NCBI GenBank assembly: GCA_002269645.1 | Contig: NIVC01004551.1 | Span: 1-42,236 of the forward strand | Length of the DNA stretch: 42,236 nt | Reading direction: 5' to 3' | Source: Macrostomum lignano | Taxonomy: Eukaryota | Part shown: positions 19,001 to 42,147 of the stretch, piece after piece | Position numbering within the stretch: the stretch's first letter is position 1 | How the letters are laid out: every line of letters begins with the position of its first letter | Notes under the pieces: generated by a model | The model's database searches: none | What the model saw: only the letters and a program-made list of their open reading frames with translations | Told to the model about the DNA's origin: nothing | Translations under genes and position numbers: made by a program

Positions 19001-20277
19001 CCCTGCCTACCCCTTCACACCCTCCCTGCCTACCCCTTCACACCCTCCCTGACTACCCCTTCACACTCTCTTTCCCTACCCTTTCACACCCTCCCTGACT
19101 ACCCCTTCACACCCTCTTTCCCTACCGCTTCACACCCTCTTTCCCTACCTCTTCACACCCTCTTTTCCTACCCCTTCACACCCTTCCTCCCTACCCCTTC
19201 ACACCCTCCCTAACCCATTCACACTCCCTTCACACCCTCTCTCTACTCCTTTCTCAACTCTCTCCGTCTACTCCTTCACACCCTCTTTCCCTACCCCTTC
19301 ACACCCTCTTTACCTACCCTTTCACACCCTCTCTCCCTACCCCTTCGCACCCTCCCTAACCCATTCACACTCCCTTCACACCCTCTCTCTACTCCTTTCT
19401 CAACTCTCTCCGTCTACTCCTTCACACCCTCTTTCCCTACCCCTTCACACCCTCTTTACCTACCCTTTCACACCCTCTTTCCCTACCCCCTTCACACCCT
19501 CTTCCCCTATCCCTTCACACCCTATCAACCTCTACACTCTCTTTCTACCCTCTTCACACACTCCCTGTACCCTCCACATCCTCTCTTCCTATTTTCTTCA
19601 CACCCTCTCTCTTCATACCGCTGTATCACCCTCTTTCTCTACGCCCTCTTCATCCTCTAATAGTAATGTGTATATTACTGTGTACTGTGTAGTATTACCA
19701 TATATATATAATACCACATATATAAATTAGTCTACGCGTCTACTTTGCAAAGTTAATCAAGTACAGCAGCAGAATTGACACTCTATACTTTTTACCCGAG
19801 TCAGTATTTATTGAGTTCTTCCGTTTCTACGTGTAAATAACGACTAGCGCAAGCCGAACTTTTCATTTCCAGTCGTTCACTCGGTCCTGATTGAAATTCT
19901 AAGAAGTCTCGCAAGCCAAAGGGGGTTTGGGCGGCTTTTTAGTTCCGAATAAATTTATCCAGTTTCATCCCGAGATCCGCCTTTCAATCATCTCTGCGGC
20001 TGAGAAAAACACCAGACCTAAGGGAAACTAGTCTATACTTGCTCTGTTTTAGTCCACTGTGTACTGCGGCAGTGGCGGGTGTAGCTCTGCCCTGATGCTA
20101 CTGGGTTTTGGTGTGCAAATTCTGGTCAGAATATATCTACTGTAGCTCGCTTAGCTAATAGAAGTTATACTACTTTATTATTCTGTTCATTATTTTCATG
20201 CCCGTCTGCCTTTGTGTCTGTATTAGTGTCTCCCTTAGCGGCTGTCTATGGACACCGAGATAAACAGACAGTGCCTT

Positions 20278-20320
<43 letters not shown>

Positions 20321-20361
20321 TAGTGTCTGTCTGCTGTCTGTCTGTCTGTCTGTCTGTCTGC

Positions 20362-20397
<36 letters not shown>

Positions 20398-20417
20398 AGT
20401 CTGTCTTAGTGTCTTAG

Positions 20418-20450
<33 letters not shown>

Positions 20451-20453
20451 TAG

Positions 20454-20526
<73 letters not shown>

Positions 20527-20562
20527 TAGTGTCTGTCTGCTGTCTGTCTGTCTGTCTGTCTA

Positions 20563-20594
<32 letters not shown>

Positions 20595-20628
20595 CCTGTC
20601 TTAGTGTCTGTCTGTCTGCCTGTCTTAG

Positions 20629-20701
<73 letters not shown>

Positions 20702-20738
20702 GTCTTAGTGTCTGTCTGTCTATCTGTCTGTCTGTCTA

Positions 20739-20821
<83 letters not shown>

Positions 20822-20861
20822 TAGTGTCTGTCTGCTGTCTGTCTGTCTGTCTGTCTGTCTA

Positions 20862-20916
<55 letters not shown>

Positions 20917-20930
20917 TAGTGTCTGTCTGC

Positions 20931-21023
<93 letters not shown>

Positions 21024-21052
21024 GTCTGTCTTAGTGTCTGTCTGTCTATCTA

Positions 21053-21105
<53 letters not shown>

Positions 21106-21106
21106 G

Positions 21107-21139
<33 letters not shown>

Positions 21140-21153
21140 TAGTGTCTGTCTGC

Positions 21154-21242
<89 letters not shown>

Positions 21243-21312
21243 TAGTGTCTTAGTGTCTGTCTGTCTGTCTTAGTGTCTGTCTGTCTGCTGTCTGTCTGTT
21301 TGCCTGTCTGCC

Positions 21313-21385
<73 letters not shown>

Positions 21386-24300
21386 TAGTGTCTGTCTGTC
21401 TGCTGTCTGTCTGTTTGCCTGTCTGCCTGTCTGCATTTAGTTTTTAGTATCCGTTTTGGCCATACCATCTGTATGATTGCTCTGTTGCTCAATCCTTTGT
21501 CGCTCTATCCCCAAATGTCTTCACAGAAGTCTGGGGTGTAGACATGGCCAGTGTTGGACTTGCCGGCGGATGTAGCCGAGGACAAAAGCGAATCGCAAAG
21601 GGAAAGTGTGTAGCCAGTCAAATGTTCCCCTCTGCAGTTTCTTCCTCATTTGCTTGTTTGTGGCTTCTTTTTTCAAATCCCGCGGGTCAGCCAGCAGCCA
21701 GCCAGCCTCTGCTGTGGGTGTAAGGGGTTGGGTTGGCACAGTTTAGGACACGGTCAGAGAAAGCTCCTGGGAAAGCTGCTTTGCCCGCGTCTAGTAATAA
21801 GCGAAATGGCGAAGGTAGCCGCCCTGAAAAACCGTTTGCTTAGGTTAAATCGTTGCTGAGGAACGTGGAAGGTTGAAAGACGGGACTAAAAAAGATTTTT
21901 TTGTGAAGAAGGGAGGGTTGAAAAGATAAATGAGTAGAGGTAGAGAGAAAAAAGAGTAGAAGAAAGAGAGCAGAGATGGTACGGTAAGAAATTAGAGGAT
22001 AGGGTGAGAGAGTAGAGGATAGGGTGAGAGAGTAGAGGATAGGGTGAGAGAGTAGAGAGGATAGGGTGGGAGAGTAGAGGATAGGGTGAGAGAGTAGAGG
22101 ATAGGGTGAGAGAGTAGAGAGGATAGGGTGAGAGAGTAGAGAGGATAGGGTGAGAGAGTAGAGGATAGGGTGAGAGAGTAGAGAGGATAGGGTGAGAGAG
22201 TAGAGGATAGGGTGAGAGAGTAGAGAGGATAGGGTGAGAGAGTAGAGAGGATAGGGTGAGAGAGTAGAGGATAGGGTGAGAGAGTAGAGAGGATAGGGTG
22301 AGAGAGTAGAGGATAGGGTGAGAGAGTAGAGAGGATAGGGTGAGAGAGTAGAGGATAGGGTGAGAGAGTAGAGAGGTTAGGGTGAGAGAGTAGAGGATAG
22401 GGTGAGAGAGTAGAGAGGATAGGGTGAGAGAGTAGAGGATAGGGTGAGAGAGTAGAGAGGATAGGGTGAGAGAGTAGAGGATAGGGTGAGAGAGTAGAGA
22501 GGATAGGGTGAGAGAGTAGAGGATAGGGTGAGAGAGTAGAGAGGATAGGGTGAGAGAGTAGAGGATAGGGTGAGAGAGTAGAGAGGATAGGGTGAGAGAG
22601 TAGAGGATAGGGTGAGAGAGTAGAGAGGATAGGGTGAGAGAGTAGAGGATAGGGTGAGAGAGTAGAGAGGATAGGGTGAGAGAGTAGAGGAAAGGGTGAG
22701 AGAGTAGAGGAAAGGGTGAGAGAGTAGAGGATAGGGTGAGAGAGTAGAGAGGATAGGGTGAGAGAGTAGAGGATAGGGTGAGAGAGTAGAGAGGATAGGG
22801 TGAGAGAGTAGAGAGGTTAGGGTGAGAGAGTAGAGGATAGGGTGAGAGAGTAGAGGATAGGGTGAGCTAGTGAGGGTATTGAGAGATAGCGTATTGAGAG
22901 AGTAGAAAGTGGGGAGACAGGGTGAGGAGGCAAGTAAGACGATGGGAGAGAAGATAAGAGAGATTGGACAGCAGAAAGTTGCTTATCAGTCACAGACTGA
23001 CTGTCGAGTGTCACAATTTGGTCTAGGAAGTGAGCAGCCATCCTCCACTAGTTATGTTTGAGCACCGCTGATCCGAATTAGTACTCTTATAGATAGAAGA
23101 TAGATTCGCGTGCATCTGCTGCCCTCCCGACTTTCCAATTCCCTCTTCTTGCCCGCCAGCGTTGCGCTTGAAATGATTTGCATACCGCATCCCATGTTGA
23201 ACCAGAGCCTGGAGTTGCAACTCTTCCCCCCGTCCATAGCCATCCCAGTTTTTTGACAACTGTAGGCTGCACACACAAGAACTTGCAGTCAGCCTATAGT
23301 TGTCTAAAAATTGGATGTTTGAGTCGGGGAAGAGTTGTTGCTCTTCTAGATTTTCCTTGGTTCTCCTTGGCTGGGCCTCGAGCATTTCTAGCCTGGATCT
23401 ATTCATCTATCTAGCCGTTTTGCTGTCTATTCCGCCCAGAAGTATTCCCCATAATCTAATTTATGCGCATTTTGTGTATGCTGGCTACTTGACTCTGCTG
23501 TTTATTGCAGTTCTCCTAGTATTGGAAATTGCCTGGCATCTGATCAGCCTGCCAGTCCTTGCACTGCTACTGCTGCCTTGGTCGCTGCTTCAACACTTGC
23601 CGGAGAAGATTTCCCAGCTAAAGGACTGTTCTGATCGATCAGTGTCTGTGCGCCTATTGGCTGGTAAGCGCCGGCTGGGCTGATGAGGCTTTGCTACATG
23701 TAGCTTTGACGGGGAGACTGTTAGAGACTCTTAGTGTCTGCAGATTGACAATATATACTCGCACGTTAGGTTGAGAATAGAATGGACACTGAGAGTGAGA
23801 AGAGGGTGAGATAGACACTGAGAGTGAGAAGAGGGTGAGATAGACACTGAGAGTGAGAAGAGGGTGAGATGGACACTGAGAGTGAGAAGAGGGTGAGATA
23901 GACACTGAGAGTGAGAAGAGGGTGAGATAGACACTGAGAGTGAGAAGAGGGTGAGATAGACACTGAGAGTGAGAAGAGGGTGAGATAGACACTGAGAGTG
24001 AGAAGAGGGTGAGATGGACACTGAGAGTGAGAAGAGGGTGAGATGGACACTGAGAGTGAGAAGAGGGTGAGATAGACACTGAGAGTGAGAAGAGGGTGAG
24101 ATGGACACTGAGAGTGAGAAGAGGGTGAGATGGACACTGAGAGTGAGAAGAGGGTGAGATAGACACTGAGAGTGAGAAGAGGGTGAGATAGACACTGAGA
24201 GTGAGAAGAGGGTGAGAGAGACACTGAGAGTGAGAAGAGGGTGAGATGGACACTGAGAGTGAGAAGAGGGTGAGATAGACACTGAGAGTGAGAAGAGGGT

Positions 24301-27300
24301 GAGATAGACACTGAGAGTGAGAAGAGGGTGAGATAGACACTGAGAGTGAGAAGAGGGTGAGATAGACACTGAGAGTGAGAAGAGGGTGAGAGAGACACTG
24401 AAAGTGAGAAGAGGGTGAGATAGACACTGAGAGTGAGAAGAGGGTGAGATAGACACTGAGAGTGAGAAGAGGGTGAGAGAGACACTGAGAGTGAGAAGAG
24501 GGTGAGATAGACACTGAGAGTGAGAAGAGGGTGAGATAGACACTGAGAGTGAGAAGAGGGTGAGATAGACACTGAGAGTGAGAAGAGGGTGAGATAGACA
24601 CTGAGAGTGAGAAGAGGGTGAGATAGACACTGAGAGTGAGAAGAGGATGAGAGAGACACTGAGAGTGAGAAGAGGGTGAGATAGACACTGAGAGTGAGAA
24701 GAGGGTGAGAGAGACACTGAGAGTGAGAAGAGGGTGAGATAGACACTGAGAGTGAGAAGAGGGTGAGATAGACACTGAGAGTGAGAAGAGGGTGAGAGAG
24801 ACACTGAGAATGAGAAGAGGGTGAGAGAGACACTGAGAATGAGAAGAGGGTGAGAGAGACACTGAGAGTGAGAAGAGGGTGAGAGAGACACTGAGAGTGA
24901 GAAGAGGGTGAGATAGACACTGAGAGTGAGAAGAGGGTGAGATGGACACTGAGAGTGAGAAGAGGGTGAGATGGACACTGAGAGTGAGAAGAGGGTGAGA
25001 TAGACACTGAGAGTGAGAAGAGGATGAGATAGACACTGAGAGTGAGAAGAGGGTGAGAGAGACACTGAGAATGAGAAGAGGGTGAGAGAGACACTGAGAA
25101 TGAGAAGAGGGTGAGAGAGACACTGAGAGTGAGAAGAGGGTGAGATAGACACTGAGAGTGAGAAGAGGGTGAGAGAGACACTGAGAATGAGAAGAGGGTG
25201 AGAGAGACACTGAGAATGAGAAGAGGGTGAGAGAGACACTGAGAGTGAGAAGAGGGTGAGAGAGACACTGAGAGTGAGAAGAGGGTGAGATAGACACTGA
25301 GAGTGAGAAGAGGGTGAGATAGACACTGAGAGTGAGAAGAGGATGAGAGAGACACTGAGAGTGAGAAGAGGGTGAGATGGACACTGAGAGTGAGAAGAGG
25401 GTGAGATAGACACTGAGAGTAAGAAGAGGGTGAGATAGACACTGAGAGTGAGAAGAGGGTGAGATAGACACTGAGAGTGAGAAGAGGGTGAGATGGACAC
25501 TGAGAGTGAGAAGAGGGTGAGATGGACACTGAGAGTGAGAAGAGGGTGAGATAGACACTGAGAGTGAGAAGAGGGTGAGATAGACACTGAGAGTGAGAAG
25601 AGGGTGAGATAGACACTGAGAGTGAGAAGAGGGTGAGATGGACACTGAGAGTGAGAAGAGGGTGAGATGGACACTGAGAGTGAGAAGAGGGTGAGATAGA
25701 CACTGAGAGTGAGAAGAGGGTGAGATGGACACTGAGAGTGAGAAGAGGGTGAGATAGACACTGAGAGTGAGAAGAGGGTGAGATAGACACTGAGAGTGAG
25801 AAGAGGGTGAGATAGACACTGAGAGTGAGAAGAGGGTGAGATGGACACTGAGAGTGAGAAGAGGATGAGATAGACACTGAGAGTGAGAAGAGGGTGAGAT
25901 AGACACTGAGAGTGAGAAGAGGGTGAGATAGACACTGAGAGTGAGAAGAGGGTGAGATAGACACTGAGAGTGAGAAGAGGGTGAGAGAGACACTGAGAGT
26001 GAGAAGAGGGTGAGAGAGACACTGAGAGTGAGAAGAGGGTGAGATAGACACTGAGAGTGAGAAGAGGGTGAGATGGACACTGAGAGTGAGAAGAGGGTGA
26101 GATGGACACTGAGAGTGAGAAGAGGGTGAGATAGACACTGAGAGTGAGAAGAGGGTGAGAGAGACACTGAGAGTGAGAAGAGGGTGAGATAGACACTGAG
26201 AGTGAGAAGAGGGTGAGATAGACACTGAGAGTGAGAAGAGGGTGAGAGAGACACTGAGAGTGAGAAGAGGGTGAGAGAGACACTGAGAGTGAGAAGAGGG
26301 TGAGATAGACACTGAGAGTGAGAAGAGGGTGAGATAGACACTGAGAGTGAGAAGAGGGTGAGAGAGACACTGAGAGTGAGAAGAGGGTGAGAGAGACACT
26401 GAGAGTGAGAAGAGGGTGAGATAGACACTGAGAGTGAGAAGAGGGTGAGATGGACACTGAGAGTGAGAAGAGGGTGAGATAGACACTGAGAGAGAAGAAG
26501 GTGAGATAGACACTGAGAGTGAGAAGAGGGTGAAATGAATACTGAGAGTGAGAAGAGGGTGAGATGAATACTGAGAGTGAGAAGAGGGTGAGATAGACAC
26601 CGAGAGGGAGAAGAGGGTGAGATGGAGAGTGAGAAGAGGCTGAGATTGACACTCATAAGAGGATGAGATAGACACTGAGAGTGAGCAGACAGTAAGATAG
26701 ACATTGAGAGTGAGAAGAAGGTGAGATGGATACTGAGAGTGAGAAGAGGGTGAGATAGACACTGAGAGTGAGAAGAGGGTAATATTGAGAATGAGAGGAG
26801 GGGTGGTTCAGATTGAAAAAAATCGTGAAATATTATATCTTTGACAAGATTTGATATGACCTCCAAATTATCATTCAAACGCGTATGGTTCTACTGTAAG
26901 TAAGTGAATCAACCGCCCGCTGTTTTTTCTCTTCTCCTGTCAGCCGTATCTGCAATCGATTGGACAGTGGCTCTGCTGATTTCCGGCGCTCTGATCTGCC
27001 TGCTGCATCGGCTCGGCTGCGACCCTTGCCGCTGGCGTCGGTTGGGCGCGCGAAAACATGACCGCCGCGGAAAGAAGCTCATCGATAGTCGCAGCTGTTA
27101 CCATGACAACCTGATTGACGCCGACGGGGATAAGTTAGTCTATTTCAAGAAACTATTGTCATTTCCTATGCAGAGTTGAGAGAAATGTGCGATTAGAAAG
27201 TCTTCTGCTGACATACAAACAGACAGACAGACAGACAGACAGAAACAAGATAGAACAGTGGTTGCTACAATCCATGTCATCAGTGTTCTCACAATCACCC

Positions 27301-30300
27301 CGCCCGTCCGCACGCCTGCAATGTTTGGCAGCTGCGACAGCAACAAGAAGCTGCCTGGCCAGTTGCCACCGCTTCCACCGCCCCCGCCGACGTCCATACG
27401 CCGTCGTCAGCTGTGCTGCCCACCGTTTACCTCACGATCGACTTCGTCGTCGTTGCCGTTCGGCCTGACCGACGCGGCGCTGCGACTGACGCCACTGTTC
27501 GCGGATCTGAATCTGGTGGCCTCCGACCTGGCCGCCGGCCTGGTGCTGCTGCGAAGGCAACAGCGCCTTCGGCAACGATCGGAGCTTAGCGTGAGCTTTT
27601 AGGACCCTTCTGTTGCTTTTATAGGGCCTTTGTCGTGGCTTTTGTAGGGCCTAAGTTTTGGTTTTTATATAGCCTTCATAGTTGCTCTCAGACGTCAAAC
27701 TTTTATTGCGCCAAGGATAAGAGGCTTGAAAATGAAGTCTAAGTAAGATTTTCTAAAAAATTTAGTATTGCTTTGTCGCCAGGTATTATGAGTAATTTGT
27801 TTGTACTTTTAATCCTCCGTCCGAACCTAGGAGGGCTCCAAGCGCGTGCTGGACTACATGTCCGGCCGGCCTATCTACTCGGCCACGCGATTCTTCAACT
27901 TGGCCAATCCGACCGACAGAATCGAAATTGAATTGGCTTTGTACTGCGCCAAGCTAATACTGGTTGCCGAAGCCTGTTGTTGTCATGGCAACCGTAGCGT
28001 CACCGGCGCAGTTCGGCACAGTTTAAATCGACAAGGCGTTAGCGACGCCCGCTTTCGGTTAACCTACGCCAGCCGCAATTGTTTTGCCGGCTACGACGCT
28101 TTCACGCGGAATATTTTTGTAGTTGTAGCGCCAAGCGTTACTGTCGCTTCGTCTACTACTACTAGCGCTAGTAGTACGCTGAGGATGCCTTCAATGAGCG
28201 AGCTGGAGAGCGGAGTTGCGCCGATACCGCTTCCGGCCGGCGTTGATGGCGGCGCCGAGTGGCTGGGCCACGCGGGGTCAATTGGCGCCGCTATTCAACT
28301 AGGCGCCGAATTGGCGCGCCATCGCGTACTGGAGACTGCGGCGGCTGCTGCCGGCGATGTAAACGTTGAGTCGAGCTTCGTTGAAGTGATGCTCACCGGT
28401 CATGGCGTTGGCGGCGGCGCCGCGGTCATACTCACTTTGATGGCGCTGGCGCGCGGCGAGGCTTGGGCCAGCCGATCGCGCGTAACGGCTCTGGCGCCGC
28501 CCGGTGGTTTACTCGGCCGGGAGGCGGCCACGCTAGCCAGACGGTTCTCTACCGCCGTTGTCATCGGACGGGATGCCGTCGCTCGACTGGGTTTGGCGCA
28601 GGTTGCGACGCTGCGTCGTAGAATGGTGCGGCTTCTGAATGGCTGCCGAGCGCACCGGTGGAGCGTCATTGGCGGACATTGGCTTGGTAAGGATCTCACT
28701 GATCAGGGAGTGAGTTGGGCGTGTCCGAGTCATCAGGGAGGAAGGTGGGCGTGTCCGAGTCATCAGGGAGGGAGGTGGGCGTGTCCGAGTCATCAGGGAG
28801 TGAGGTGGGCGTGTCCGAGTCATCAGGGAGTGAGGTGGGCGTGTCCGAGTCATCAGGGAGGGAGGTGGGCGTGTCCGAGTCATCAGGGAGTGAGGTGGGC
28901 GTGTCCGAGTCATCAGGGAGTGAGGTGGGCGTGTCCGAGTCATCAGGGAGGGAGGTGGGCGTGTCCGAGTCATCAGGGAGTGAGGTGGGCGTGTCCGAGT
29001 CATCAGGGAGTGAGGTGGGCGTGTCCGAGTCATCAGGGAGTGAGGTGGGCGTGTCCGAGTCATCAGGGAGTGAGGTGGGCGTGTCCGAGTCATCAGGGAG
29101 TGAGGTGGGCGTGTCCGAGTCTCCAGGGTGGGAGGTGGGTGTGTCCGAGTCATCAGGGAGTGAGGTGGGCGTGTCCGAGTCGTTGGGTGAGGTGGGTGCG
29201 TCCGAGTCTCCAGGGTGGGAGGTGGGTGTGTCCGAGTCATCAGGGAGTGAAGTGGGCGGTTTTCTCCTATAAATTTCAGCCAGCCGCCGTTTGTCTCTCT
29301 GCTGTTGCAATAGCCGTCACAAGCAACTGCAAGAGTCAGAGGATACCCTGAATGCGTCGCCTGGAGACGAGTTGGCCGACACCAACGCCGCAATGTCGTC
29401 ATCCGACTCGGCGTCGCCGAGGACGTATCCGGCTCTGCAGTTGCCAGGCCGGGTACTGCACGTAGTCCGTGCTCGAAATACCGACGGCAAGCCGGTGTTT
29501 CACGCTTTGAAAGCCGACGGCACCGATTTTGACGAGGCAAGTTAAAATTATTCAATACTAATTAGGTGACGAGGCTTTTCAGCCTGAAGAGACTCTTATA
29601 GTTGCTCATGCCGTTTACCCATTTCTACAGATACTCGCCTCTCCGTCTATGCTGCGCGATCACTCGCTTGGCTACGCCCAGTTCGCCTTGGCCGCCGTCC
29701 TCTCCGACTACGACAGATTGCAGCCGTCGCCGCGCGGCTCTCCAGGCACACTTCGTCCAGCGGCGCAAAGTTTCGCTGCTGCTGCGACCTCGATCGAACG
29801 ACGCCTAGGGATTCAGACAGACTGCGGGGCCGGCAGCGAGACAGAGGACAAAAGAAGTTATTCAATTGTTCAGCAAAACAATTTGGCTTCGTCGCCGTCT
29901 CAAATGTCGGTAGAGTCGGATATTGATAGTGACCTTCTTTCTTCGTCGATTATGGGTGCGCCGATCGATTCCAACGGCGCCGCCGCAGGTGACAAAATGA
30001 TCATCAGCTCGACAGCCGAACCGGCGGCAGCTTCGGCCTCCGCCCTGCTGTCGATGATGTCGCATTCGCACACTGTGCCAGCCTCCGTGCTTCGAAATTT
30101 CGGCTTGCCACCGTCAGCGTCCAGTATGCCGTATTCGAACGGCCAGGCGCCCATAGCAACGCCCGAATCCTTATCTTTAGCATCGGTGGCTTCCTCATCT
30201 CTGTCTGAGTTAAGCAGCTCCGGCGGCGGCTACCGGCGCTCCAGCGCGGCGCCCGCTCCCGCCAACCGGCCCCTGTCGGACCTGTTCGGCTACTGCTACT

Positions 30301-30854
30301 ACCTGTTCCCGGATGAGGAAGCCGGTCGCCGGCGTCCGTTCGACGATATTTTGCCCAGGCCGCGAGTTAATTTCGCGTGCATTGCGGCTGCAATGTCCAA
30401 TTCAACAGGTCCGTCTGTGCCAGTTGCTAGGGGCGATCTTAACAACCGGTCGTCTGTAGGCAATTATTCAACATCGTCATCGTGCGAGACCATCACCGAC
30501 TGCGTTGTAGCCGACTCAGAGGCTCCTGTCGCTGTTGCTGTTGCCTGCAGAGTCGATACTAAAGAGGACGATGACGGAAATCTCGACGATTCGGCTAGCG
30601 TGCGGAGCAGCGACTTAGAATCGGCCGAGCGGACACCCAGACTGCTGCGCTCCGGTGTTAATCTTCGCTTACTATCCGTAGATGATGCTGAAGATGAAGA
30701 GGACAACAATAATTATACGGCGGATTCTAGTGATGAAGATGGCAATGATAGCGACAATGAGGAGGGCCGGCTCTACATGACAATGGATAGCGACGCGTCC
30801 GGGGTTAGCATTCAGACTGTAATAGCCGGGACTCGCGGAGGAGACTATGTCTGA
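13016..30854 (+). CDS. DAGLA: Diacylglycerol lipase alpha-like 4-TM lipase-3 protein, predicted catalytically inactive; exons 13016-13110, 17385-17767, 23511-23663, 26944-27133, 27332-27590, 27831-28686, 29280-29536, 29631-30854 (3417 nt, ~1138 aa)
   Basis: Phases all compatible. Motifs match DAGL: [21 protein letters not shown] (cf. MPGIVVFRRRWSVGSDDLVLP), [80 protein letters not shown]; long Ser/acidic tail as in the alpha type. Exon 6 acceptor (27332) is the least certain. Confidence 0.88.
13285..13795. repeat. GA-rich array with 19-bp core (GAAATGAGAGAGGAGAGAA), DAGL intron 1
   Basis: Period 19 (13391 to 13410). Confidence 0.93.
14521..15135. repeat. CT-rich low-complexity polypyrimidine tract, DAGL intron 1
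   Basis: Almost only C and T, no fixed period. Confidence 0.93.
16085..16460. repeat. 21-bp minisatellite (GTTGAATGATTGGAGTGCTAA), ~18 copies, DAGL intron 1
   Basis: Period 21 read directly. Confidence 0.93.
17770..18345. repeat. 20-bp minisatellite (GTGTCTCTTCTGTCTCCCGT) grading into two related units, starting at the DAGL exon 2 donor
   Basis: Period 20; first copy overlaps gtgagt at 17768. Confidence 0.95.
18930..19660. repeat. Degenerate ~23-bp C-rich minisatellite (CCTACCCCTTCACACCCTCTTTC), DAGL intron 2
   Basis: Recurrent CCTTCACACCCT core with variable spacing. Confidence 0.85.
20277..21434. repeat. (TCTG)n microsatellite with recurrent TTAGTG interruptions, DAGL intron 2
   Basis: Direct reading. 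Confidence 0.97.
21500..23480 (-). mobile_element. Possible degenerate LINE ORF2 5' region (APE endonuclease plus linker) split by a tandem array
   Basis: Minus translation [14 protein letters not shown]...[16 protein letters not shown]...GYGRG...LVQHGMRY...LSSIY resembles APE blocks; [11 protein letters not shown] beyond the array resembles the post-APE linker. Many stops and frameshifts; recognised from memory only. Confidence 0.3.
21995..22870. repeat. Purine-rich 20/22-bp minisatellite (GAGAGAGTAGAGGATAGGGT, with or without AG), often alternating, DAGL intron 2
   Basis: Direct reading. Confidence 0.96.
23785..26780. repeat. 29-bp minisatellite (GAGATAGACACTGAGAGTGAGAAGAGGGT), ~100 copies, filling DAGL intron 3
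   Basis: Period 29; explains the three ~1000-aa minus-strand ORFs. Confidence 0.98.
27219..27242. repeat. Short (ACAG)n tract in DAGL intron 4
   Basis: Direct reading; reverse orientation of the TCTG arrays. Confidence 0.85.
28702..29262. repeat. 30-bp minisatellite (GAGTCATCAGGGAGTGAGGTGGGCGTGTCC), ~18 copies, filling DAGL intron 6
   Basis: Period 30; bounded by donor g|gtaagg (28687) and acceptor tttcag| (29279). Confidence 0.96.
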
Positions 30855-32160: not shown

Positions 32161-32644
32161 GGCACCCTGCCTAATTGATCTGGGCACCCTGTCTAACTGA
32201 TCTGGGCACCCTGTCTAATTGATCTGGGCACCCTGTCTAATTGATCTGGGCACCCTGTCTAACTGATCTGGGCACCCTGTCTAATTGATCTGGGCACCCT
32301 GTCTAACTGATCTGGGCACCCTGTCTAATTGATCTGGGCACCCTGTCTAATTGATCTGGGCACCCTGTCTAACTGATCTGGGCACCCTGTCTAATTGATC
32401 TGGGCACCCTGTCTAATTGATCTGGGCACCCCGTCTAACTGATCTGGGTACCCTGTCTAACTGATCTGGGCACCCTGTCTAACTGATCTGGGCACCCTGT
32501 CTAACTGATCTGGGTACCCTGTCTAACTGATCTGGGCACCCTGTCTTATTGATCTGGGCACCCTGTCTTATTGATCTGGGAACCTGTCGATTTGATAATT
32601 GATCTGGGCACCCTGTCGATTTGATAATTGATCTGGGCACCCTG
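32161..32644. repeat. 22-bp minisatellite (GGCACCCTGTCTAATTGATCTG), ~22 copies
   Basis: Period 22. Confidence 0.96.
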
Positions 32645-32667
32645 TATGTAGCATACATTGGCTCTAT

Positions 32668-32905
32668 ATCTGACAGATATTGACACCATGTCTAAAAGAT
32701 ATTGGCACCATATCTGACAGATATTGACACCATGTCTAAAAGATATTGGCACCATATCTGACAGATATTGACACCATGTCTAAAAGATATTGGCACCATA
32801 TCTGACAGATATTGACACCATGTCTAAAAGATATTGGCACCATATCTGACAAATATTGACACCATGTCTAAAAGATATTGGCACCATATCTGACAAATAT
32901 TGGCA
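32668..32905. repeat. 44-bp repeat (dimer of two 22-mers), ~5 copies
   Basis: GACACCATGTCTAAAAGATATT + GGCACCATATCTGACAGATATT. Confidence 0.93.
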
Positions 32906-33430
32906 CGATTTCTAACAACTTTTGCTATGCCATTAGTGACATTGTCGTTATCTAACCCCCCTTAAGTGATACCTAACAGACTGCAGATAGCTGACCTGAG
33001 CTTGCCACTGGCATGTCGTCTCCTATAATAATTTTTATTTCCATGCATATCTCTCTATCTTCTATTATTAAATATAATTTTTAATAGAAGTCCAAACTAT
33101 GTGCCTTAAAATCTTATATGATGTAATCTAGTCCTACCGTTTTTTATAGTTTTTTTACCTTGCCTGCACAAATTGTAGAAATTTATGTTTTTATTTTTTG
33201 TTTTGCGATATGTGCTTTCCGTTTTTTCTGTTTATTTTTTCTGCACTTTTATACATCTGTGTTTGTGCTTTGGGCGGAAACATTAGACAATAAAATAAAT
33301 TAAAGCAACTGGAAAATTCTCTAAAGTTCACGTATTAGGCTGTGTGTTATAATCCTTTAATTTCTTTATCTGTAAATCTCTAAATCTCTAAATTCTCTAG
33401 TAAATAATAACATACTTTCGAATACTTGCA

Positions 33431-33547: not shown

Positions 33548-36500
33548 ATGTCGGCGCCGGTAGCCAAGCGCGTCAGCGATGCGGTTTCGGCTGTAATCCG
33601 AGCCGGGCCCGCCTACGGCCTGGCCCAGCCTGTCAGCGTTGAATGGCGCGGTGCGCGATGCCAGCTGCCCCAGCCGGGGCCGCAATCGGCGCCAGTGTTT
33701 GTGGATTTCAGCTCGGTCAATGTGGCCAAACCTTTGCACGCTGGTCATCTTCGAGCCACGGTGTTGGGCAATTTTGTGGTGCAGATTAATAGAGCATTCG
33801 GGCATCGGGTTATTGGGATTAATTATCTGGGCGATTGGGGCAGGCAGTTCGCCCTGCTGCTGGCTGGGATGGAGAGCTTTGGACGGCCTGAGCTGCTTGG
33901 GTCGGAGGATGATCAACAGGTAAGCCTGCTGGATATTGGGGCCTTATGGACTAGCATTATTCTTGAAATAATGCTGGAGACTGATTCCTGATTTATGTCG
34001 GAGACTGGAACCCTTAGCTGATGTCGGAGACTGGAACCCTTAGCTGATCTCGGAGACTGGAACCCTTAGGTGATGTCGGAGACTGGAACCCTTAGCTGAT
34101 GTCGGAGACTGGAACCCTTAGGTGATGGCGGAGACTGGAGCCCTTAGCTGATGTCGCAGATAGTGTCGCCTGCCCCGCACGCGCAGGTGTCAGAGCAGGT
34201 CAGCCGGCTGGCGGTGCAGCACATGCAGTCCGTGTACGCCAGGGCCGGCACCGAACTGCCAGCCGAAGCGGTCGAATCCGCCTACGCCCGTTTAGAATCC
34301 GGCGAGCCGCAAGCTATGCGGCTCTGGCGCTTAGCCAAACGGCACTCACTGGCCGAACTGGACGCCTGCTATCGGCGCCTGTCAGTCAGCTTTGACCGGC
34401 TCGAGTTCGAGTCCGATTATGCCAAGCAGACTGGCAAACTGCTGGCTCTGCTGGATCGGCGCGGCCTGTTAGCTGCGGCGCCGGACGGAGCCAAACTGCT
34501 CCGGCTTGCCGACAGCGCCGACGACGAGGCTGTGGTGCAGAAGCGGGACGGCAGCTCGCTGTACTTTGGCAGAGACCTGCTGGCTGCTCTGGATAGGTGC
34601 GCTTGTTTGTGTTGTAATAACTTTCTAGTAAATTGTTATTGCTGCACATGAGTAAGACTCGCTAAATTCTTCTCATCTCCCTTCTACCTTATCGCCTCCA
34701 GCTCTTTCAGTCTCTCTCCTTCCCCTCACCTCTTCTCCCCTCTCCTTCTCTCCCCTCTCTTCTCCCTCCCCCTCTCCTTCCCTTCCCTCTCTTCTCCCTC
34801 CCCTCTCCTTCTCTCCCCTCTCTTCTCCCTCCCCCTCTCCTTCCCTTCCCCTCTCTTCTCCCCTCTCCTTCCCTCCCCTCTCTTCTCCCTCCCCCTCTCC
34901 TTCCCTTCCCCTCTCTTCTCTTCCTCTCCTTCCCCTCCCCTCTCTTCTCCCCCTCTCCTTCCCTTCCCCTCTCTTCTCTTCCTCTCCTTCCCCTCCCTCT
35001 CTTCTCCCCCTCTCCTTCCCCTCCCCTCTCTTCTCCCCCCTCTCCTTCCCTCCCCCTCTCTTCTCCTCCCAGCTCTTCTCCCTCCTCTCTGTCTCCTTCC
35101 CCTCTCCCCACCTTATCGGCTCCTTTTTCTATTCTGATGAAATAATAAGAGAATAAGAGAAAACGAGCGTATTTAGAAGCGCCCGTATTTAATAGCTACG
35201 ATTCTTTGAAAAGTCTAAGCCTTAGAAAAGTTTCAATAGCCTTAGAAAATCTCTTCTATCCAATGCAGAGCCGACAATCTAGGCTGTGGACGCGCCCACT
35301 ACGTTGTTGAATCGGCCCAGCGGCTGCACTTTGACCGTCTTGGCCGCGCCCTGACCGCCCTGGGCCGTCCGGACCTGGCCAATCCGTCACCCTGGCCGAT
35401 GCACGTCGAATTCGGCCGAGTGGAAGGCATGAGCACCAGGCGGAGCGGCTCCGGCGGAGTGGTACTGCTCCGCAACATACTCGACGTTGGCCAAGCCAGG
35501 ATGCTCGAACGATCGAAAGCGTCGCCAAATCGACGAATCGACGGGTCCGACGCTTCATCGATTGCTGATAGGCTAGCCGCCAGCGTCGTTGCCATGGAGA
35601 TGATGCGAGTGCGCCGGCTGCAGCCGGTTAAGTTCAGCTGGGACAGCGATAATTCGGCTGTTGGCGCTCAGTACTGCCATGCCAGGTGCGATTCAATGAC
35701 TGAGAGAACAGAAGTAGCTTACCTGACGGTCATGGGCCGGGTAGATATGTAGCAGGGTCCCTGAACACCCATTGGATAGCAGTAGCATCAGCCCCTGAAG
35801 ACCCAAGGGATAGCAGTAGCATCAGCCCCTGAAGACCCAAGGGATAGCAGTAGCATCAGCCCCTGAAGACCCAGGGGATAGCAGTAGCATCAGCCCCTGA
35901 AGACCCAAGGGATAGCAGTAGCATCAGCCCCTGAAGACCCAGGGGATAGCAGTAGCATCAGCCCCTGAAGACCCAAGGGATAGCAGTAGCATCAGCCCCT
36001 GAAGACCCAGGGGATAGCAGTAGCATCAGCCCCTGAAGACCCAAGGGATAGCAGTAGCATCAGCCCCTGAAGACCCAAGGGATAGCAGTAGCATCAGCCC
36101 CTGAAGACCCAAGGGATAGCAGTAGCATCAGCCCCTGAAGACCCAAGGGATAGCAGTAGCATCAGCCCTGAAGACCCAAGGGATAGCAGTAGCATCAGCC
36201 CCTGAAGACCCAAGGGATAGCAGTAGCATCAGCCCCTGAAGACCCAAGGGATAGCAGTAGCATCAGCCCCTGAAGACCCAGGGGATAGCAGTAGCATCAG
36301 CCCCTGAAGACCCAGGGGATAGCAGTAGCATCAGCACCTGAAGACCCAGGGGATAGCAGTAGCATCAGCCCCTGAAGACCCAGGGGATAGCAGTAGCATC
36401 AGCACCTGAAGACCCAGGGGATAGCAGTAGCATCAGCCCTGAAGACCCAGGGGATAGCAGTAGCATCAGCACCTGAAGACCCAAGGGATAGCAGTAGCAT

Positions 36501-37158
36501 CAGCCCCTGAAGACCCAAGGGATAGCAGTAGCATCAGCCCCTGAAGACCCGGGGATAGCAGTAGCATCAGCCCTGAAGACCCGGGGGATAGCAGTAGCAT
36601 CAGCCCCTGAAGACCCAGGGGATAGCAGTAGGATCAGCCCTGAAGACCCAAGGGATAGCAGTAGCATCAGCCCCTGAAGACCCGGGGGATAGCAGTAGCA
36701 TCAGCCCCTGAAGACCCGGGGGATAGCAGTAGGATCAGCCCCTGAAGTTCTCTGGTGAGAGAAAAAAGCAACCAGCCCCAAACCCTTGCAGGCTGTGCAG
36801 CCTCGCCAGCAAAGCAGCCAAAGCCGGTATCAGCAGCCCAGACGATGGCAGTAGTATCGATCTGGCATTGAATTTAGCTGGACCCAAGGCTGCTACAGCG
36901 GCTAACGAACTGGCCGAGCAATTGCTAGCCTATCCGGACACGGCTCTAGAAGCCTTTCTAACGTACGAGCCATGCGTATTAGTGGCCTACACTAATAGAT
37001 TGGTGTCGCGCGCAAATGCCTGTCTGCGCGTCCTACCCGTGCTGACATGCGCCAAAGATAGCGGCGCGATTGGCCGATTGGCGCTGTTTAACTCGACCCG
37101 GTCGGTGCTGGCCTCCGCTATGCGACTGCTTGGCTTGACTCCGATGCTTAGCATTTGA
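33548..37158 (+). CDS. RARS2: Mitochondrial-type arginyl-tRNA synthetase; exons 33548-33919, 34187-34596, 35269-35685, 36792-37158 (1566 nt, ~521 aa)
   Basis: VDFSSVNVAKPLHAGHLRAT (HIGH), NYLGDWG, DGSSLYFGRDL, HVEFGRVEGMSTRR (KMSKS equivalent, mito/bacterial type), QYCHARL, C-terminal LRLLGLTP-like end; GT-AG introns with compatible phases. Exact start codon less certain. Confidence 0.92.
33996..34156. repeat. 26-bp minisatellite (GATGTCGGAGACTGGAACCCTTAGCT), ~6 copies, RARS2 intron 1
   Basis: Period 26. Confidence 0.93.
34705..35110. repeat. CT-rich polypyrimidine tract, RARS2 intron 2
   Basis: Direct reading. Confidence 0.92.
35775..36747. repeat. 34-bp minisatellite (GATAGCAGTAGCATCAGCCCCTGAAGACCCAAGG), ~28 copies, RARS2 intron 3
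   Basis: Period 34 (35775 to 35809). Confidence 0.97.
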
Positions 37159-37392: not shown

Positions 37393-38178
37393 GTGAGGGT
37401 CACATTGCACAGTCACACGAGGGTCACATTGCACAATGCACAGCCACATAAGGGTCACTTTGCACAGTCACATGAGGGTCACATCTCAGTCACATGAGGG
37501 TCACATCTCAGTCACATCAGGGTCACATTGCACAGTCACATCAGGGTCACATTGCACAGTCACATGAGGGTCACATTGCACAGTCACATGAGGGTCACAT
37601 TGCACAGTCACATGAGGGTCACATTGCACAGTCATATGAGGGTCACATTGCACAGTCACATGAGGGTCACATCTCACAGTCACATGAGGGTCACATTGCA
37701 CAGTCACATCAGGGTCACATTGCACAGTCACATGAGGGTCACATTGCACAGTCACATCAGGGTCACATTGCACAGTCACATCAGGGTCACATTGCACAGT
37801 CACATGAGGGTCACATTGCACAGTCACATGAGGGTCACATTGCACAGTCACATCAGGGTCACATTGCACAGTCACATGAGGGTCACATTGCACAGTCACA
37901 TGAGGGTCACATTGCACAGTCACATGAGGGTCACATTGCACAGTCATATGAGGGTCACATTGCACAGTCACATGAGGGTCACATCTCACAGTCACATGAG
38001 GGTCACATTGCACAGTCACATCAGGGTCACATTGCACAGTCACATGAGGGTCACATTGCACAGTCACATCAGGGTCACATTGCACAGTCACATCAGGGTC
38101 ACATTGCACAGTCACATGAGGGTCACATTGCACAGTCACATGAGGGTCACATTGCACAGTCACATGAGGGTCACATTG
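37393..38178. repeat. 24-bp minisatellite (GAGGGTCACATTGCACAGTCACAT), ~32 copies, between RARS2 and NEK2
   Basis: Period 24, with two related 12-bp halves. Confidence 0.97.
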
Positions 38179-38316
38179 CTGATCGCCTCAGTTACTCATG
38201 CGCTCTCATTGCTGAGATTCTATCTGATAAATCGGAACTTTCTATACTATTCCAGTCGCAGCAGCAGCCACCTCAGTTGATCTCGACTGCTGCTGAAGAG
38301 CGTCAGCAACAGTCCA

Positions 38317-40982
38317 ATGAGGATTCGACAGCAGCCCCCGCCGCCGCTGCCCAACCGGCGGTCATTCAGCTTCGGGCGGCGCTATGGGGGCCGACACTCT
38401 TCGTCGACACGCAGTCGCGGCTCGAATGCTTCGCAGGGCCCAGCGTCAGGCAGCGGCGGCGGCGTCGGCGTCGGCAGCGGCAACGGCAGCGCCCTGGCCG
38501 ACTACGAGGTCGTCGAAGTGATCGGGCGGGGCAGCTCGGGTGTGGTGAAAAAAGTCCGCCGCTTAAGAGACGGCGCCAGCTTTGCTTGGAAAGAGATCGA
38601 CTTTGGCGACATGTGCGACGTCAGGAAACAGATGCTGCTGACCGAGATTAACCTGATAATCCAGCTGCGGCACTGCAATATCGTGCGCTGCTATAACTAT
38701 ATAATTGATCGGGAGGCGAAGCGGGCCTACATTATCATGGAGTACTGCCCCAATGGCGATCTGGCTGCGCTTATTAAACAGCATAGGAGAGACAAGTGAG
38801 CTGTGATTTAGATTTTCTAAGTGCGCTCACACAGGGCAATGAATTCATTTAGCAAGTGTCACATTTGCCTCCTTCCTCCCTACACAGAAAGTACATCCCT
38901 GAAGATGACATCCTTCGCTGGCTTTCACAGCTCGCTCTGGCTCTACGCTGCTGCCACTGTCGCCAAGGTGTCAAAGCGGTGCTGCACCGGGACCTGAAGC
39001 CGGCCAATTGTTTCCTAGATGCCGGTCGAAGCATCAAACTTGGCGACTTCGGCCTCGCCAGAGTACTGGCCGGAGATGCCAGCTTTGCTAGCACCTACCT
39101 GGGCACTCCCTACTATATGAGTCCGGAGCAGGTGTGAATCGGGGAAATTTTCGTACTAACTATGCTTAAGATCAGAAGTACTTTTGTCCGACAAAGATTA
39201 GTTTGCGCTTTTTAAAAACATCACTGTAAAGTACTCATGTACCCTAAAAGTACTCTTGCACTGTAAAGTACTCATGTAGCCTAAAAGTAATCTTGCACTG
39301 TAAAGTACTCATGTACCCTAAAAGTACTCTTGCACTGTAAAGTACTGATGTACCCTAAAAGTACTCTTGCACTGGAAAGCACTCATGTACTGTAAAGTAC
39401 TCTTGTACCCTATAAGTTCTCCCGTACTGTAAAAGTGCGTTTCTTCTTTGTGTCCCTTTGTGCCTGTGGGTATCCAAATTTTTATATATACGCTATATTT
39501 GAGCTATAAAAGTACATTTCTCCCGTATTATTTACTCTTTTATACCTTTTTAGAAACAAAATAAACCCAGACTCACCCTGCCGCCTCACCCGCAGGTGAA
39601 ACTGTGCGGCTACACTGAAAAATCGGACATGTGGGCCCTTGGCGTGGTCGCTTACGAGCTGGCCTGTTTAAGGCCTCCATTTAATGGGTCCACTCACGAC
39701 CAGTTAGTGGCGGCTATTTTATCTGGCAGCTATCGCCCCTTGCCAGATGTTTACGGAGAGGTGAGAGCCGTCTGCACTTTATTTTTAGTCTACTACTTAA
39801 ATTTATTAATGCTACCACTATGTTTTCTCTGTGCTCCTGCTGTCTTCTAAGATCCTATAGTTTATTCTGGGACCAGATCCATTGTACTTTGAATTATCCC
39901 ATTGCGTCCTGAATTATCCCGCTGCTTCCTGAATTATCCCCATTGTGTCCTGAGTTATCCCATTGTACCCTGAATTATCCCCTTGTACCCTGAATTATCC
40001 CATTGTACCCTGAATTATCCCCTTGTACCCTGAATTATCCCATTGTGTTCTAAATTATCCCTGTGTCCTGAATTATCCCATTGTGCCCTGAATTATCTCA
40101 TTGTGTTCTAAATTATTCCTATGTGTCCTGAATTATCGCATTGTACCCTGAATTATACTATTGTTCTGAAATATCCCATTGTGTTCTATGATATTCCATC
40201 AACATGACACTTTTTCGCATCACCTCCATCGCTCACAGCCTCTCCGCTCCATCATCGCCGACCTGCTGCAGCCGGACCCGGACAGACGCATCTCCGTTGA
40301 GCAGCTGCTCGACCGGCCTTCAATTCGCGACCGCCTGCCGCCCGATGAGCTGCCGGAGCCCAGCCTGCGCCGCTGGCTGACGAGCAGCGCCGGCTGGCTG
40401 ACAGCCTTGGCCGGCTTCGCGGCTGTTGAAGTCGCGCGAACGAGAGCTGGACGCTCGCGCAGCCGCAGCTGACGAGCGCGAGGCTCGGCTGGCCAAGCGC
40501 GAGGCCGAGGTAGCCAGGCGGGAGGCGCGCGCCAGACTGCTTAACGACCGACTGCGGACTAGCACCTCTGACCGACTTGAGTATTGTAAGCTTGGTTTGA
40601 GCACACTGTCAGATCCAGTTTGAGCACACTGTCAGATCCAGTTTGAGCACACTGTCAGATCCAGTTTGAGCACACTGTCAGATCCAGTTTGAGCACACTT
40701 ATGATCTTCTGCATCAACTCTCTCCAGGTGGACTCAAGCGACAAGGAGAACAACTTCAGTTTGGGAGTCGCCTCGTGCGCCGACTCAAACTCGACTGCTT
40801 CAGCTGCCGCATTTGTCTCAGCATCCTATGCTGCATCTGCATCCGCGTCGCCCGTGGCTCCAGTACACGATGAAGGCGTTGGTGACGCCTGCGGCTGCGT
40901 TGACGAGAAGGAAGAGCCGCCGCCTCAGTTGCACCGGCCTGTGCCGCGGCCGAGACGAACCTTGCAGAGGGAAGCCAACTAG
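38317..40982 (+). CDS. NEK2: NEK2-like NIMA-family kinase; exons 38317-38795, 38888-39131, 39596-39760, 40239-~40585, 40728-40982; frame breaks in exon 4 as assembled
   Basis: DYEVVEVIGRGSSG, WKEIDFGDM, KQMLLTEIN, MEYCPNGDL, VLHRDLKPAN, KLGDFGLAR, GTPYYMSPE, EKSDMW closely track NEK2; downstream E/R coiled coil and KEN box. Kinase exons are in phase; 3' part needs frameshifts; start uncertain. Confidence 0.88.
39222..39435. repeat. 37-bp repeat (18+19 dimer, CTGTAAAGTACTCATGTACCCTAAAAGTACTCTTGCA), NEK2 intron 2
   Basis: Period 37 (39261 to 39298). Confidence 0.88.
39885..40180. repeat. 20-bp minisatellite (CCCTGAATTATCCCATTGTA), NEK2 intron 3
   Basis: Period 20. Confidence 0.9.
40599..40699. 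repeat. 23-bp minisatellite (TTTGAGCACACTGTCAGATCCAG), ~4 copies, NEK2 intron 4
   Basis: Period 23. Confidence 0.92.
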
Positions 40983-41149: not shown

Positions 41150-41518
41150 TTGCCTGTTTGTCTGTCTGTCTGTCTGTCTGCCTGTCTTAGTGTCTGTCTG
41201 TCTGTCTGTCTGTCTGCCTGTCTTAGTGTCTGTCTGTCTGTCTGTCTGTCTGCCTGTCTTAGTGTCTGTCTGTCTGTCTGTCTGTCTGCCTGTCTTAGTG
41301 TCTGTCTGTCTGTCTGTCTGTCTGCCTGTCTTAGTGTCTGTCTGTCTGTCTGTCTGTCTGCCTGTCTTAGTGTCTGTCTGTCTGTCTGTCTGTCTGCCTG
41401 TCTTAGTGTCTGTCTGTCTGTCTGTCTGTCTGCCTGTCTTAGTGTCTGTCTGTCTGTCTGTCTGTCTGCCTGTCTTAGTGTCTGTCTGTCTGTCTGTCTT
41501 AGTGTTTGTCTGTCTGTC

Positions 41519-41565
<47 letters not shown>

Positions 41566-41604
41566 TAGTGTCTGTCTGTCTGTCTGTCTGTCTGCCTGTC
41601 TTAG

Positions 41605-41649
<45 letters not shown>

Positions 41650-41685
41650 GCCTGTCTTTAGTGTCTGTCTGTCTGTCTGTCTTAG

Positions 41686-41756
<71 letters not shown>

Positions 41757-41769
41757 CTGCCTGTCTTAG

Positions 41770-41826
<57 letters not shown>

Positions 41827-41860
41827 GCCTGTCTTAGTGTCTGTCTGTCTGTCTGTCTAC

Positions 41861-41892
<32 letters not shown>

Positions 41893-41997
41893 CTGCCTGT
41901 CTTAGTGTCTGTCTGTCTGTCTGTCTACCTGTCTGTCTGTCTGTCTGCCTGTCTTAGTGTCTGTCTGTCTGCCTGTCTTAGTGTCTTAGTGTCTTAG

Positions 41998-42030
<33 letters not shown>

Positions 42031-42109
42031 GCCTGTCTGTCTGCCTGTCTTAGTGTCTGTCTGTCTGTCTGTCTACCTGTCTTAGTGTCTGTCTGTCTGC
42101 CTGTCTTAG

Positions 42110-42147
<38 letters not shown>

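Follow-up and report, generated by a model that had tools for sequence, protein, structure and literature searches.

Diacylglycerol lipases (DAGLs) make 2-arachidonoylglycerol, and their sn-1 alpha type is represented by human DAGLA, Drosophila inaE, and invertebrate DAGL-alpha. Here, we describe a gene of this type in the free-living flatworm Macrostomum lignano, in which glycine stands in the place of the serine nucleophile. It lies on contig NIVC01004551.1 of GenBank assembly GCA_002269645.1 (positions 1 to 42,236, forward strand), and we refer to this whole stretch of 42,236 nucleotides as the window. The product resembles DAGL-alpha in its MPGxV...SDDL N terminus, its four transmembrane (TM) segments, and its DLxxVxSDxxAGLxLL block; in a class-3 lipase domain with PPGGLL, GxD, and SPxMxxDH motifs and a loop insert carrying a CC motif; and in a long tail with a P[LI]A[ST]PE[ST]LS motif and a hydrophobic last residue. 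It differs in having Gly for the elbow Ser, VAPS for IRGT, a disordered Ser/Thr insert of about 23 residues, and a GDYV end, compared with the common ESSV. Several marks of a pseudoenzyme are present, namely, homology to an active family, the absence of an essential catalytic residue, and an intact gene with models derived from RNA sequencing (RNA-seq). We propose, with a probability of roughly 0.6, that the gene encodes a lineage-specific, maintained, catalytically dead DAGL-alpha-type paralogue that acts noncatalytically.

Plants provide the closest case of a class-3 lipase fold that is used for signaling and not for catalysis, in the form of EDS1, PAD4, and SAG101, the last of which is without a catalytic triad. 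These proteins are soluble, have a C-terminal EP domain that mediates heterodimer formation and the binding of nucleotide-derived ligands, and possess neither TM segments nor a DAGL tail. They are the top PDB matches of a structural model of the M. lignano protein in Foldseek; however, only the lipase-like domain aligns, sequence identity is 13 to 16%, and common descent is unsupported beyond the fold family. No Pfam match to an EP domain was found in the 1138-amino-acid M. lignano protein.

In animals, the precedents for noncatalytic alpha/beta-hydrolase-fold proteins are cholinesterase-like adhesion proteins such as neuroligins (PMC5943944). Neuroligins, gliotactin, neurotactin, and the cholinesterase-like domain of thyroglobulin belong to the cholinesterase-like family, not to lipase class 3, and the domain is extracellular. 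Such proteins are ancient and widespread, whereas a dead DAGL has so far been seen in a single flatworm species. By analogy, the dead DAGL most probably works like other dead alpha/beta-hydrolase-fold proteins. Full-text literature searches returned only general reviews and no paper describing a DAGL pseudoenzyme, a flatworm DAGL, or the present gene; the case is apparently undescribed so far, while dead alpha/beta-hydrolase paralogues in general are well known.

Loss of the Active-Site Motifs

The product of the gene is 99 to 100% identical to the GenBank models BOX15_Mlig033520g1 (P0001) and BOX15_Mlig008655g1 (P0161) and to M. lignano UniRef models. Its nucleophile elbow is encoded at 28398 to 28412 by the codons GGT CAT GGC GTT GGC, which read G-H-G-V-G. 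The features of the active-site region, with predicted local distance difference test (pLDDT) scores from a structural model, are as follows.

28125 to 28136, + strand: VAPS in place of IRGT (R460A, G461P, and T462S), from MAFFT alignments
28137 to 28205, + strand: Ser/Thr-rich insert, residues 463 to 485, predicted to be disordered (pLDDT of <50; a gap in canonical sequences)
28404 to 28406, + strand: GGC, Gly552, at the nucleophile-elbow position (GHGVG for GHSLG), from the sequence and the elbow geometry in the model; same residue in P0001, P0161, and the older model P0003
28572 to 28574, + strand: GAT, Asp608 (GRD; canonical GKD), with the triad aspartate position kept, from alignment to the family column

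MAFFT aligns Gly552 with the serine of GHSLG and A460-P461-S462 with R-G-T. The IRGT(L)S motif of class-3 lipases was thus not found, and the next two positions are changed as well (L463V and S464T). An alternative local alignment, which places ASSTL beneath IRGTL and keeps the Thr, was unsupported by MAFFT with either sequence set; the Arg and Gly are lost either way. The motifs TDL, YGWP, GKD, and DHMP have become SEL, YCAK, GRD, and DHSL, respectively. GRD (28566 to 28574) and RDH (29655 to 29663; His742) both align to the family triad columns.

These readings bear on an original prediction made from the window sequence alone. The glycine codon that it had placed at 28404 to 28406 was read there directly and falls in the serine column, and the Asp (GRD) and His (RDH) that it had described as kept do align to the family columns. 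The VAPS motif that it had reported, together with the Ser/Thr insert, is present, but the coordinates that it gave, 28128 to 28136, cover only APS and fall one codon short. It had also argued that the loss of a second motif was independent of the elbow codon, and RGT, TDL, and YGWP have indeed each been lost independently.

The changes extend well past a single codon. In the catalytic region, 135 alignment columns show at least 90% conservation among 48 DAGL-alphas from outside Macrostomum, and only 63 of these are kept; another alignment gave 40 of 65 family-conserved positions. Exon 6 by itself reaches 24 bits with the Pfam Lipase_3 profile and the full protein 21.4 bits, where the gathering cutoff is 22, and the match spans only profile positions 63 to 135, from the elbow to the Asp.

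To gauge the rarity of the glycine, 1.84 billion cluster representatives were searched exhaustively with HMMER, which yielded 621 matches, 19 of them at an E value of ≤1e-30. Besides three M. lignano entries, the best matches are proteins of about 1000 amino acids with 31 to 36% identity. The best non-Macrostomum match is a Lingula DAGL-alpha (E = 1.5e-38), and Apostichopus, Artemia, and Argopecten matches are likewise sn-1 diacylglycerol lipase alpha; names were looked up for part of the top matches, and those named are DAGL-alpha. Among the best 148 of the 621 representatives, 147 keep the serine (143 as GHSxG and 4 in variant motifs), and the sole exception is a poor model of the same M. 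lignano gene. A GHSLG-type motif also occurs in 110 of 113 additional DAGL-alpha sequences, the other 3 being fragments without that region. A sequence search of the PDB returned nothing meaningful. As judged from descent and architecture, the locus is a DAGL-alpha-type member of the family.

Human DAGL-beta loses its activity upon either of the substitutions Ser443Ala and Asp495Ala (Bisogno et al. 2003, PMC2173631). Because both the Ser nucleophile and RGT are lost, the M. lignano product should not hydrolyze diacylglycerol by the serine-hydrolase mechanism, and it is almost certainly dead as a serine lipase.

Structural modeling agrees with this prediction. AlphaFold2 was run on P0161, whose N-terminal TM module and lipase domain differ from those of the window product only by F97L, with an alignment of 51 DAGLs. 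The mean pLDDT is 70, rising to 85 to 96 across the lipase core. Residue 552 sits between a strand (545 to 551) and a helix (553 to 567) at a pLDDT of about 92, so that in the model, Gly552 is at the classic nucleophile elbow of a confident lipase-3 core, with no other serine there. Foldseek searches of the PDB retrieved class-3 lipase folds at a target-normalized template modeling score (TM-score) of about 0.5, including the lipase-like domains of EDS1, PAD4, and SAG101; Rhizopus, Rhizomucor, and Thermomyces lipases; and feruloyl esterase A. These matches included no solved structure of a DAGL. Since the elbow carries Gly and the residues around it are only Gly, Val, and Ala (GHGVGGGAA), the model would exclude serine-hydrolase catalysis.

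The protein could still be an enzyme if another nucleophile or chemistry, such as a neighboring Thr or Cys or an acyltransferase-like reaction, worked with Asp608 and His742. Both residues are kept, the fold around them is confidently modeled, and Thr549 lies three residues before the elbow. Nevertheless, the apex of the strand-turn-helix presents no side chain, RGT has been lost too, a Ser-to-Ala change at this position kills DAGL-beta, and all 147 other representatives just described retain the Ser; we therefore consider continued catalysis very improbable.

Gene Structure and Membrane Architecture

The gene was rebuilt by hand and by tblastn against DAGLs. It occupies 13016 to 30854 on the + strand and consists of the following 8 exons.

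13016 to 13110, + strand: exon 1, with the ATG, the DAGL N terminus, and the onset of TM1 (tblastn with 7 DAGLs, matching their residues 1 to 31; donor GTGAGT; same exon in P0161)
17385 to 17767, + strand: exon 2, with the remainder of TM1, TM2, and a poly-Cys run (splice sites cgcag/G and T/gtgagt; junction as in the RNA-seq-derived P0161; hydropathy)
23511 to 23663, + strand: exon 3, with TM3 (acceptor 23511 as in P0161; older models P0002 and P0162 reach further upstream)
26944 to 27133, + strand: exon 4, with TM4 and a basic juxtamembrane segment (hydropathy)
27332 to 27590, + strand: exon 5, with a CC motif and a conserved block (canonical DLDVVPSDVVAGLVLL; tblastn matches from all DAGL queries)
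27831 to 28686, + strand: exon 6, the main lipase-3 domain exon (tblastn; Pfam Lipase_3)
29280 to 29536, + strand: exon 7, the interstrand loop with a CC motif, ending at the GC donor GAG/GCAAGT (tblastn)
29631 to 30854, + strand: exon 8, with His742 (29661 to 29663), a tail of about 400 amino acids, and the stop codon (tblastn)

Joined, the exons form an uninterrupted frame of exactly 1138 codons, in agreement with the splice sites and the length of about 1138 codons in the original prediction. The exon chain of P0161, a GenBank model derived from RNA-seq, is the same. Introns have AG acceptors and GT donors, except for one GC donor (GCAAGT, 29537): intron 7 (29537 to 29630) is GC-AG with a strong GC-donor consensus, and the same junction occurs in GenBank protein models.

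The architecture is that of a full DAGL-alpha, with an MPGLV N terminus, four TM segments, a class-3 lipase domain, and a long tail. In tblastn comparisons, the DAGL N terminus MPGxVxFxRRWSxGSDDL aligned with exon 1. Four hydrophobic segments, as had been predicted, were found by hydropathy within the first 240 residues (about residues 18 to 43, 96 to 114, 161 to 179, and 212 to 236) and are helices in the AlphaFold model too.

Several details of the gene model are of separate note. An earlier version of exons 2 and 3 (donor 17751 and acceptor 23300; 1203 amino acids) was dropped; the RNA-derived GenBank model uses donor 17768 and acceptor 23511, giving 1138 amino acids. Ahead of the acceptor that the RNA evidence supports, the exon 3 frame continues open for 70 codons (23300 to 23510). 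This stretch resembles the canonical DAGL PRxSMxYxLYxRL segment that precedes TM3, and is partly included in P0002 and P0162; another acceptor may be used here, or the exon may once have been longer. A run of six Cys residues directly follows TM2 (17625 to 17670; residues about 112 to 126), and other CC or CCC motifs occur at about residues 302, 408, and 650, where canonical DAGLs have CC as well. The Cys run and these motifs are possible candidate palmitoylation sites. Intron 6 is filled by a tandem repeat.

28702 to 29258, + strand: tandem repeat array of a 30-bp unit, 18.7 copies, filling intron 6

As 30 bp is a multiple of three, the exon 6 frame stays open through the whole array (27831 to 29348), a 506-codon open stretch. 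If intron 6 were retained, the protein would gain a decapeptide resembling SHQG(G/V)RWACP, repeated about 18 times, and would then end before His742.

Genomic Copies and Transcription

Two other contigs of the assembly match the gene, NIVC01001199.1 (L001) and NIVC01003067.1 (L002). They are 98 to 100% identical to the window in unique DNA and are not the same sequence, and by these differences, they are separate copies or alleles. Their presence accords with what is known of M. lignano assemblies, which are neopolyploid and redundant (PMC5730564, PMC10733133).

GHGVGGG is found in the window, in L001 and its model P0001, in L002 and its model P0161, and in P0003 from the older annotation. The glycine is not a sequencing error, because it is the same in two other genomic copies and in older gene models. 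Because AGC and GGC are one base apart, an assembly artifact, or the restoration of Ser by an alternative exon or RNA editing, might be considered. The same codon context, however, recurs in the copies and models just listed. Neither a second Ser-encoding elbow exon nor a GxSxG(A/G)G motif was found in the six frames of the window, where tblastn with nine DAGLs gave no second match. Adenosine-to-inosine editing converts A to G and not G to A, the wrong direction for AGC, and the independent losses of RGT, TDL, and YGWP would be left in place. An artifact or rescue of this kind is so improbable as to be nearly negligible.

The GenBank annotation of the NIVC contigs derives from a genome-guided RNA-seq transcriptome (StringTie/TACO), from which novel transcripts below 0.5 reads per kilobase per million mapped reads (RPKM) and without de novo overlap were discarded (PMC5730564). 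Because the RNA-seq-derived models Mlig008655g1 and Mlig033520g1 exist with the same junctions, the gene, on the evidence of these models, is transcribed and spliced as modeled.

Paralogues and Origin

At least two DAGL types of M. lignano carry the Ser; paralogues of active type, for which the original prediction had proposed to look, are present. One, P0035/P0159 (BOX15_Mlig016446g1, Mlig003648g1, and Mlig005828g1), has IRGTLS, GHSLG, GKD, and RDHLP; the other, P0045/P0275 (the UniRef A0A1I8HGW0 type), has IRGTLS, GHSLG, GKD, the His, and a long alpha-type tail. P0035/P0159 also has an insert of its own, located after the TDL motif and before the preelbow helix, in which the heptad TPEA(V/N)QS is repeated more than 10 times. 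The Ser-bearing proteins are the closest relatives of the dead copy, with an identity of about 38% in the C-terminal half of the domain, yet they differ from it in keeping IRGTLS, GHSLG, GKD, and His and in evolving more slowly.

Trees were built by neighbor joining (NJ) only, with 48 DAGL-alphas of other phyla and with other flatworms left out. The three M. lignano types form a clade relative to the 48 DAGL-alphas (bootstraps of 100/100), and within it, the dead copy pairs with P0035 (88 to 100 of 100). Derived residues are common to these two, including LTGH, Y516Q, H711R, and others. The dead copy is the most divergent of the three, with a median outgroup distance of 1.86 (versus 1.21 to 1.35) and a terminal branch of 0.94 (versus 0.38).

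Two genes lie downstream on the + strand, an arginyl-tRNA synthetase (33548 to 37155; tRNA-synt_1d and DALR_1 in the matching GenBank locus) and a NEK-like Ser/Thr kinase (38281 to 40979). The fused model P0275 consists of a canonical DAGL-alpha followed by a NEK-like kinase that is paralogous to the kinase in the window (59% and 51% identity in two blocks). Because a NEK-like kinase lies downstream of both the dead copy and a canonical DAGL-alpha, this paralogous synteny suggests that a duplication, segmental or of the whole genome, took place long before the recent polyploidy.

Maintenance or Decay

Over its 1138 codons, the frame is free of stops; the remaining five frames of this sequence contain 30 to 50. 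About 3.3% of the possible point substitutions in the coding sequence create a stop, and the protein distance to the paralogues is 1.3 to 1.9 substitutions per site. Neutral decay is hard to reconcile with a frame that would have stayed unbroken despite more than one substitution per site.

Between the window and L001, there are 9 nonsynonymous and 9 synonymous changes, for a ratio of nonsynonymous to synonymous rates (dN/dS) of about 0.35 (one-sided binomial P = 0.025), a comparison of near-identical copies with only 18 changes. The two lipase-domain exons have no nonsynonymous and two synonymous changes. An apparent excess of conservation in exons over introns between copies was abandoned as evidence; the 95% figure reflected tandem-repeat slippage, and unique intron DNA is 98 to 100% identical, like the exons.

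Some observations count against a maintained pseudoenzyme. The three copies are 98 to 100% identical, so that dN/dS depends on those 18 changes, and unique intron DNA is as similar as exons. Compared with the window, L001 has a frame-breaking 1-bp difference at 27919 (L001 position 9735), and L002 has two, at 29826 and 30430. Neither the exhaustive HMMER search nor a word-indexed homologue search, in which poly-Ala and poly-Ser words were masked and a paralogue was added as a query and which recovered the other copies, revealed an orthologue from another species. The gene identifiers and the term "diacylglycerol lipase" were not found in the searchable Macrostomum literature or in the supplements of one paper. 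Asp608 and His742 may persist through inertia and not because they serve a function. Finally, an NJ phylogeny without other flatworms could suffer from long-branch or composition effects, and its timing is rough.

The frame differences have a probable technical origin. They shorten the annotated proteins of the GenBank copies (664 and 824 amino acids, through 1-bp deletions). The two differences in L002 are G4-to-G3 runs; at 27919, the older model reads Asp-Lys-Ile (GACAAAATC), and L001 resembles an A4 run collapsed to A3. Because the differences are at or create homopolymers and the older model reads D-K-I at 27919, all three are probably PacBio consensus errors in the assembly Mlig_3_7.

The main rival view is that the duplicate, though transcribed, has no function and is turning into a pseudogene, the Ser having been lost simply because one redundant copy in a neopolyploid genome has decayed. 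Duplication in M. lignano has been massive and recent, and the two Ser-bearing DAGL types could cover the function. The Pfam score of the full protein is just below the threshold, two of the three GenBank copies have 1-bp frame disruptions, and the evidence for selection between copies is weak. Against this stand the 8-exon frame without a stop and with all splice sites intact, at a distance over which neutral drift should have broken it many times; the retention of family motifs outside the active site and of tail motifs; and the homopolymer nature of the apparent frameshifts, which are absent from the window copy. We regard a functionless duplicate as unlikely and the locus as probably a maintained, functional gene. 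The core of the original prediction, an intact and maintained DAGL-family gene without the Ser nucleophile and RGT, is supported by homology, the copies, the RNA-seq-derived models, the structural model, the paralogues, and the tail.

The C-Terminal Tail and Possible Noncatalytic Functions

Long tails are a feature of the DAGL-alpha subtype, and that of the dead copy, at about 400 amino acids, bears the two motifs PIATPESLS and GYCYY. Its features are the following.

30150 to 30176, + strand: tail motif PIATPESLS (family P[LI]A[ST]PE[ST]LS; motif in 63 of 101 long-tailed DAGLs)
30288 to 30356, + strand: GYCYY tail motif, 23 residues, within a 49-amino-acid tblastn stretch
30840 to 30851, + strand: C terminus GDYV, followed by the stop (to 30854), from the sequence

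By tblastn, the 49-amino-acid stretch (30264 to 30401) and the tail of the canonical M. lignano DAGL-alpha have 67% identity. An end resembling a class I PDZ ligand is present in 64 of 97 long-tailed DAGLs, 48 of which have ESSV; here, it is GDYV, so that a C-terminal valine is kept, and the long tail with this ending had been anticipated in the original prediction.

A maintained pseudoenzyme with these features would be a noncatalytic four-TM membrane protein that folds like a DAGL and still presents a DAGL-alpha tail. It might bind the partners of active DAGL-alpha in a scaffold or decoy role, or it might itself associate with the active enzyme. A scaffold or decoy role is favored because erosion has affected the active-site motifs, whereas those for targeting and interaction are still present, as would be expected of a dead enzyme that is localized like DAGL-alpha and binds the same tail partners. 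Tail-mediated scaffolding or competition is our tentative proposal for the specific mode. Of the hypotheses in the original prediction (sensing of diacylglycerol, scaffolding by the tail, and modulation of an active paralogue), only scaffolding gained support, and that indirectly. A role as a "sensor" that binds diacylglycerol is possible. It is more doubtful that the dead DAGL-alpha, by binding tail partners, active DAGLs, or diacylglycerol, sets where or how strongly 2-acylglycerol or endocannabinoid-type signals arise.

Repeat Content of the Window

The 42-kb window combines GC-rich exons with introns packed with tandem repeats, and long, very regular arrays dominate both introns and intergenic DNA. 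These arrays account for most of the apparent 95% divergence between genomic copies. They are as follows.

8686 to 11601: 35-bp unit, 83 copies
20278 to 21433: (TCTG)n, 291 copies
21994 to 22866: 42-bp unit, 21 copies
23785 to 26780: 29-bp unit, 104 copies
28702 to 29258: 30-bp unit, 19 copies
32161 to 32915: 22-bp unit, 20 copies
35759 to 36747: 34-bp unit, 29 copies
37394 to 38179: 24-bp unit, 33 copies
41154 to 42146: (CTGT)n, 248 copies

Significance

The impact of this case is limited in that it concerns one species so far, with a duplicate-rich genome, and the loss of catalytic residues in redundant paralogues is common in evolution. As a lineage-specific dead paralogue in a duplicate-rich neopolyploid genome, the finding is less surprising than the original prediction implied.

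In mammals, what DAGLs do besides catalysis is difficult to study apart from it. A copy that is dead by nature, still folded, and accompanied by active-looking ones would be a natural experiment on such noncatalytic roles, for example, scaffolding by the alpha tail, in an animal in which RNA interference and transgenesis are established. With it, the DAGL family would join the enzyme families that have pseudoenzyme members. If, as is more doubtful, the dead copy does control such lipid signals, the gene would encode the first animal class-3-lipase pseudoenzyme with a signaling role, an animal counterpart of the use to which plants have put the EDS1 family.

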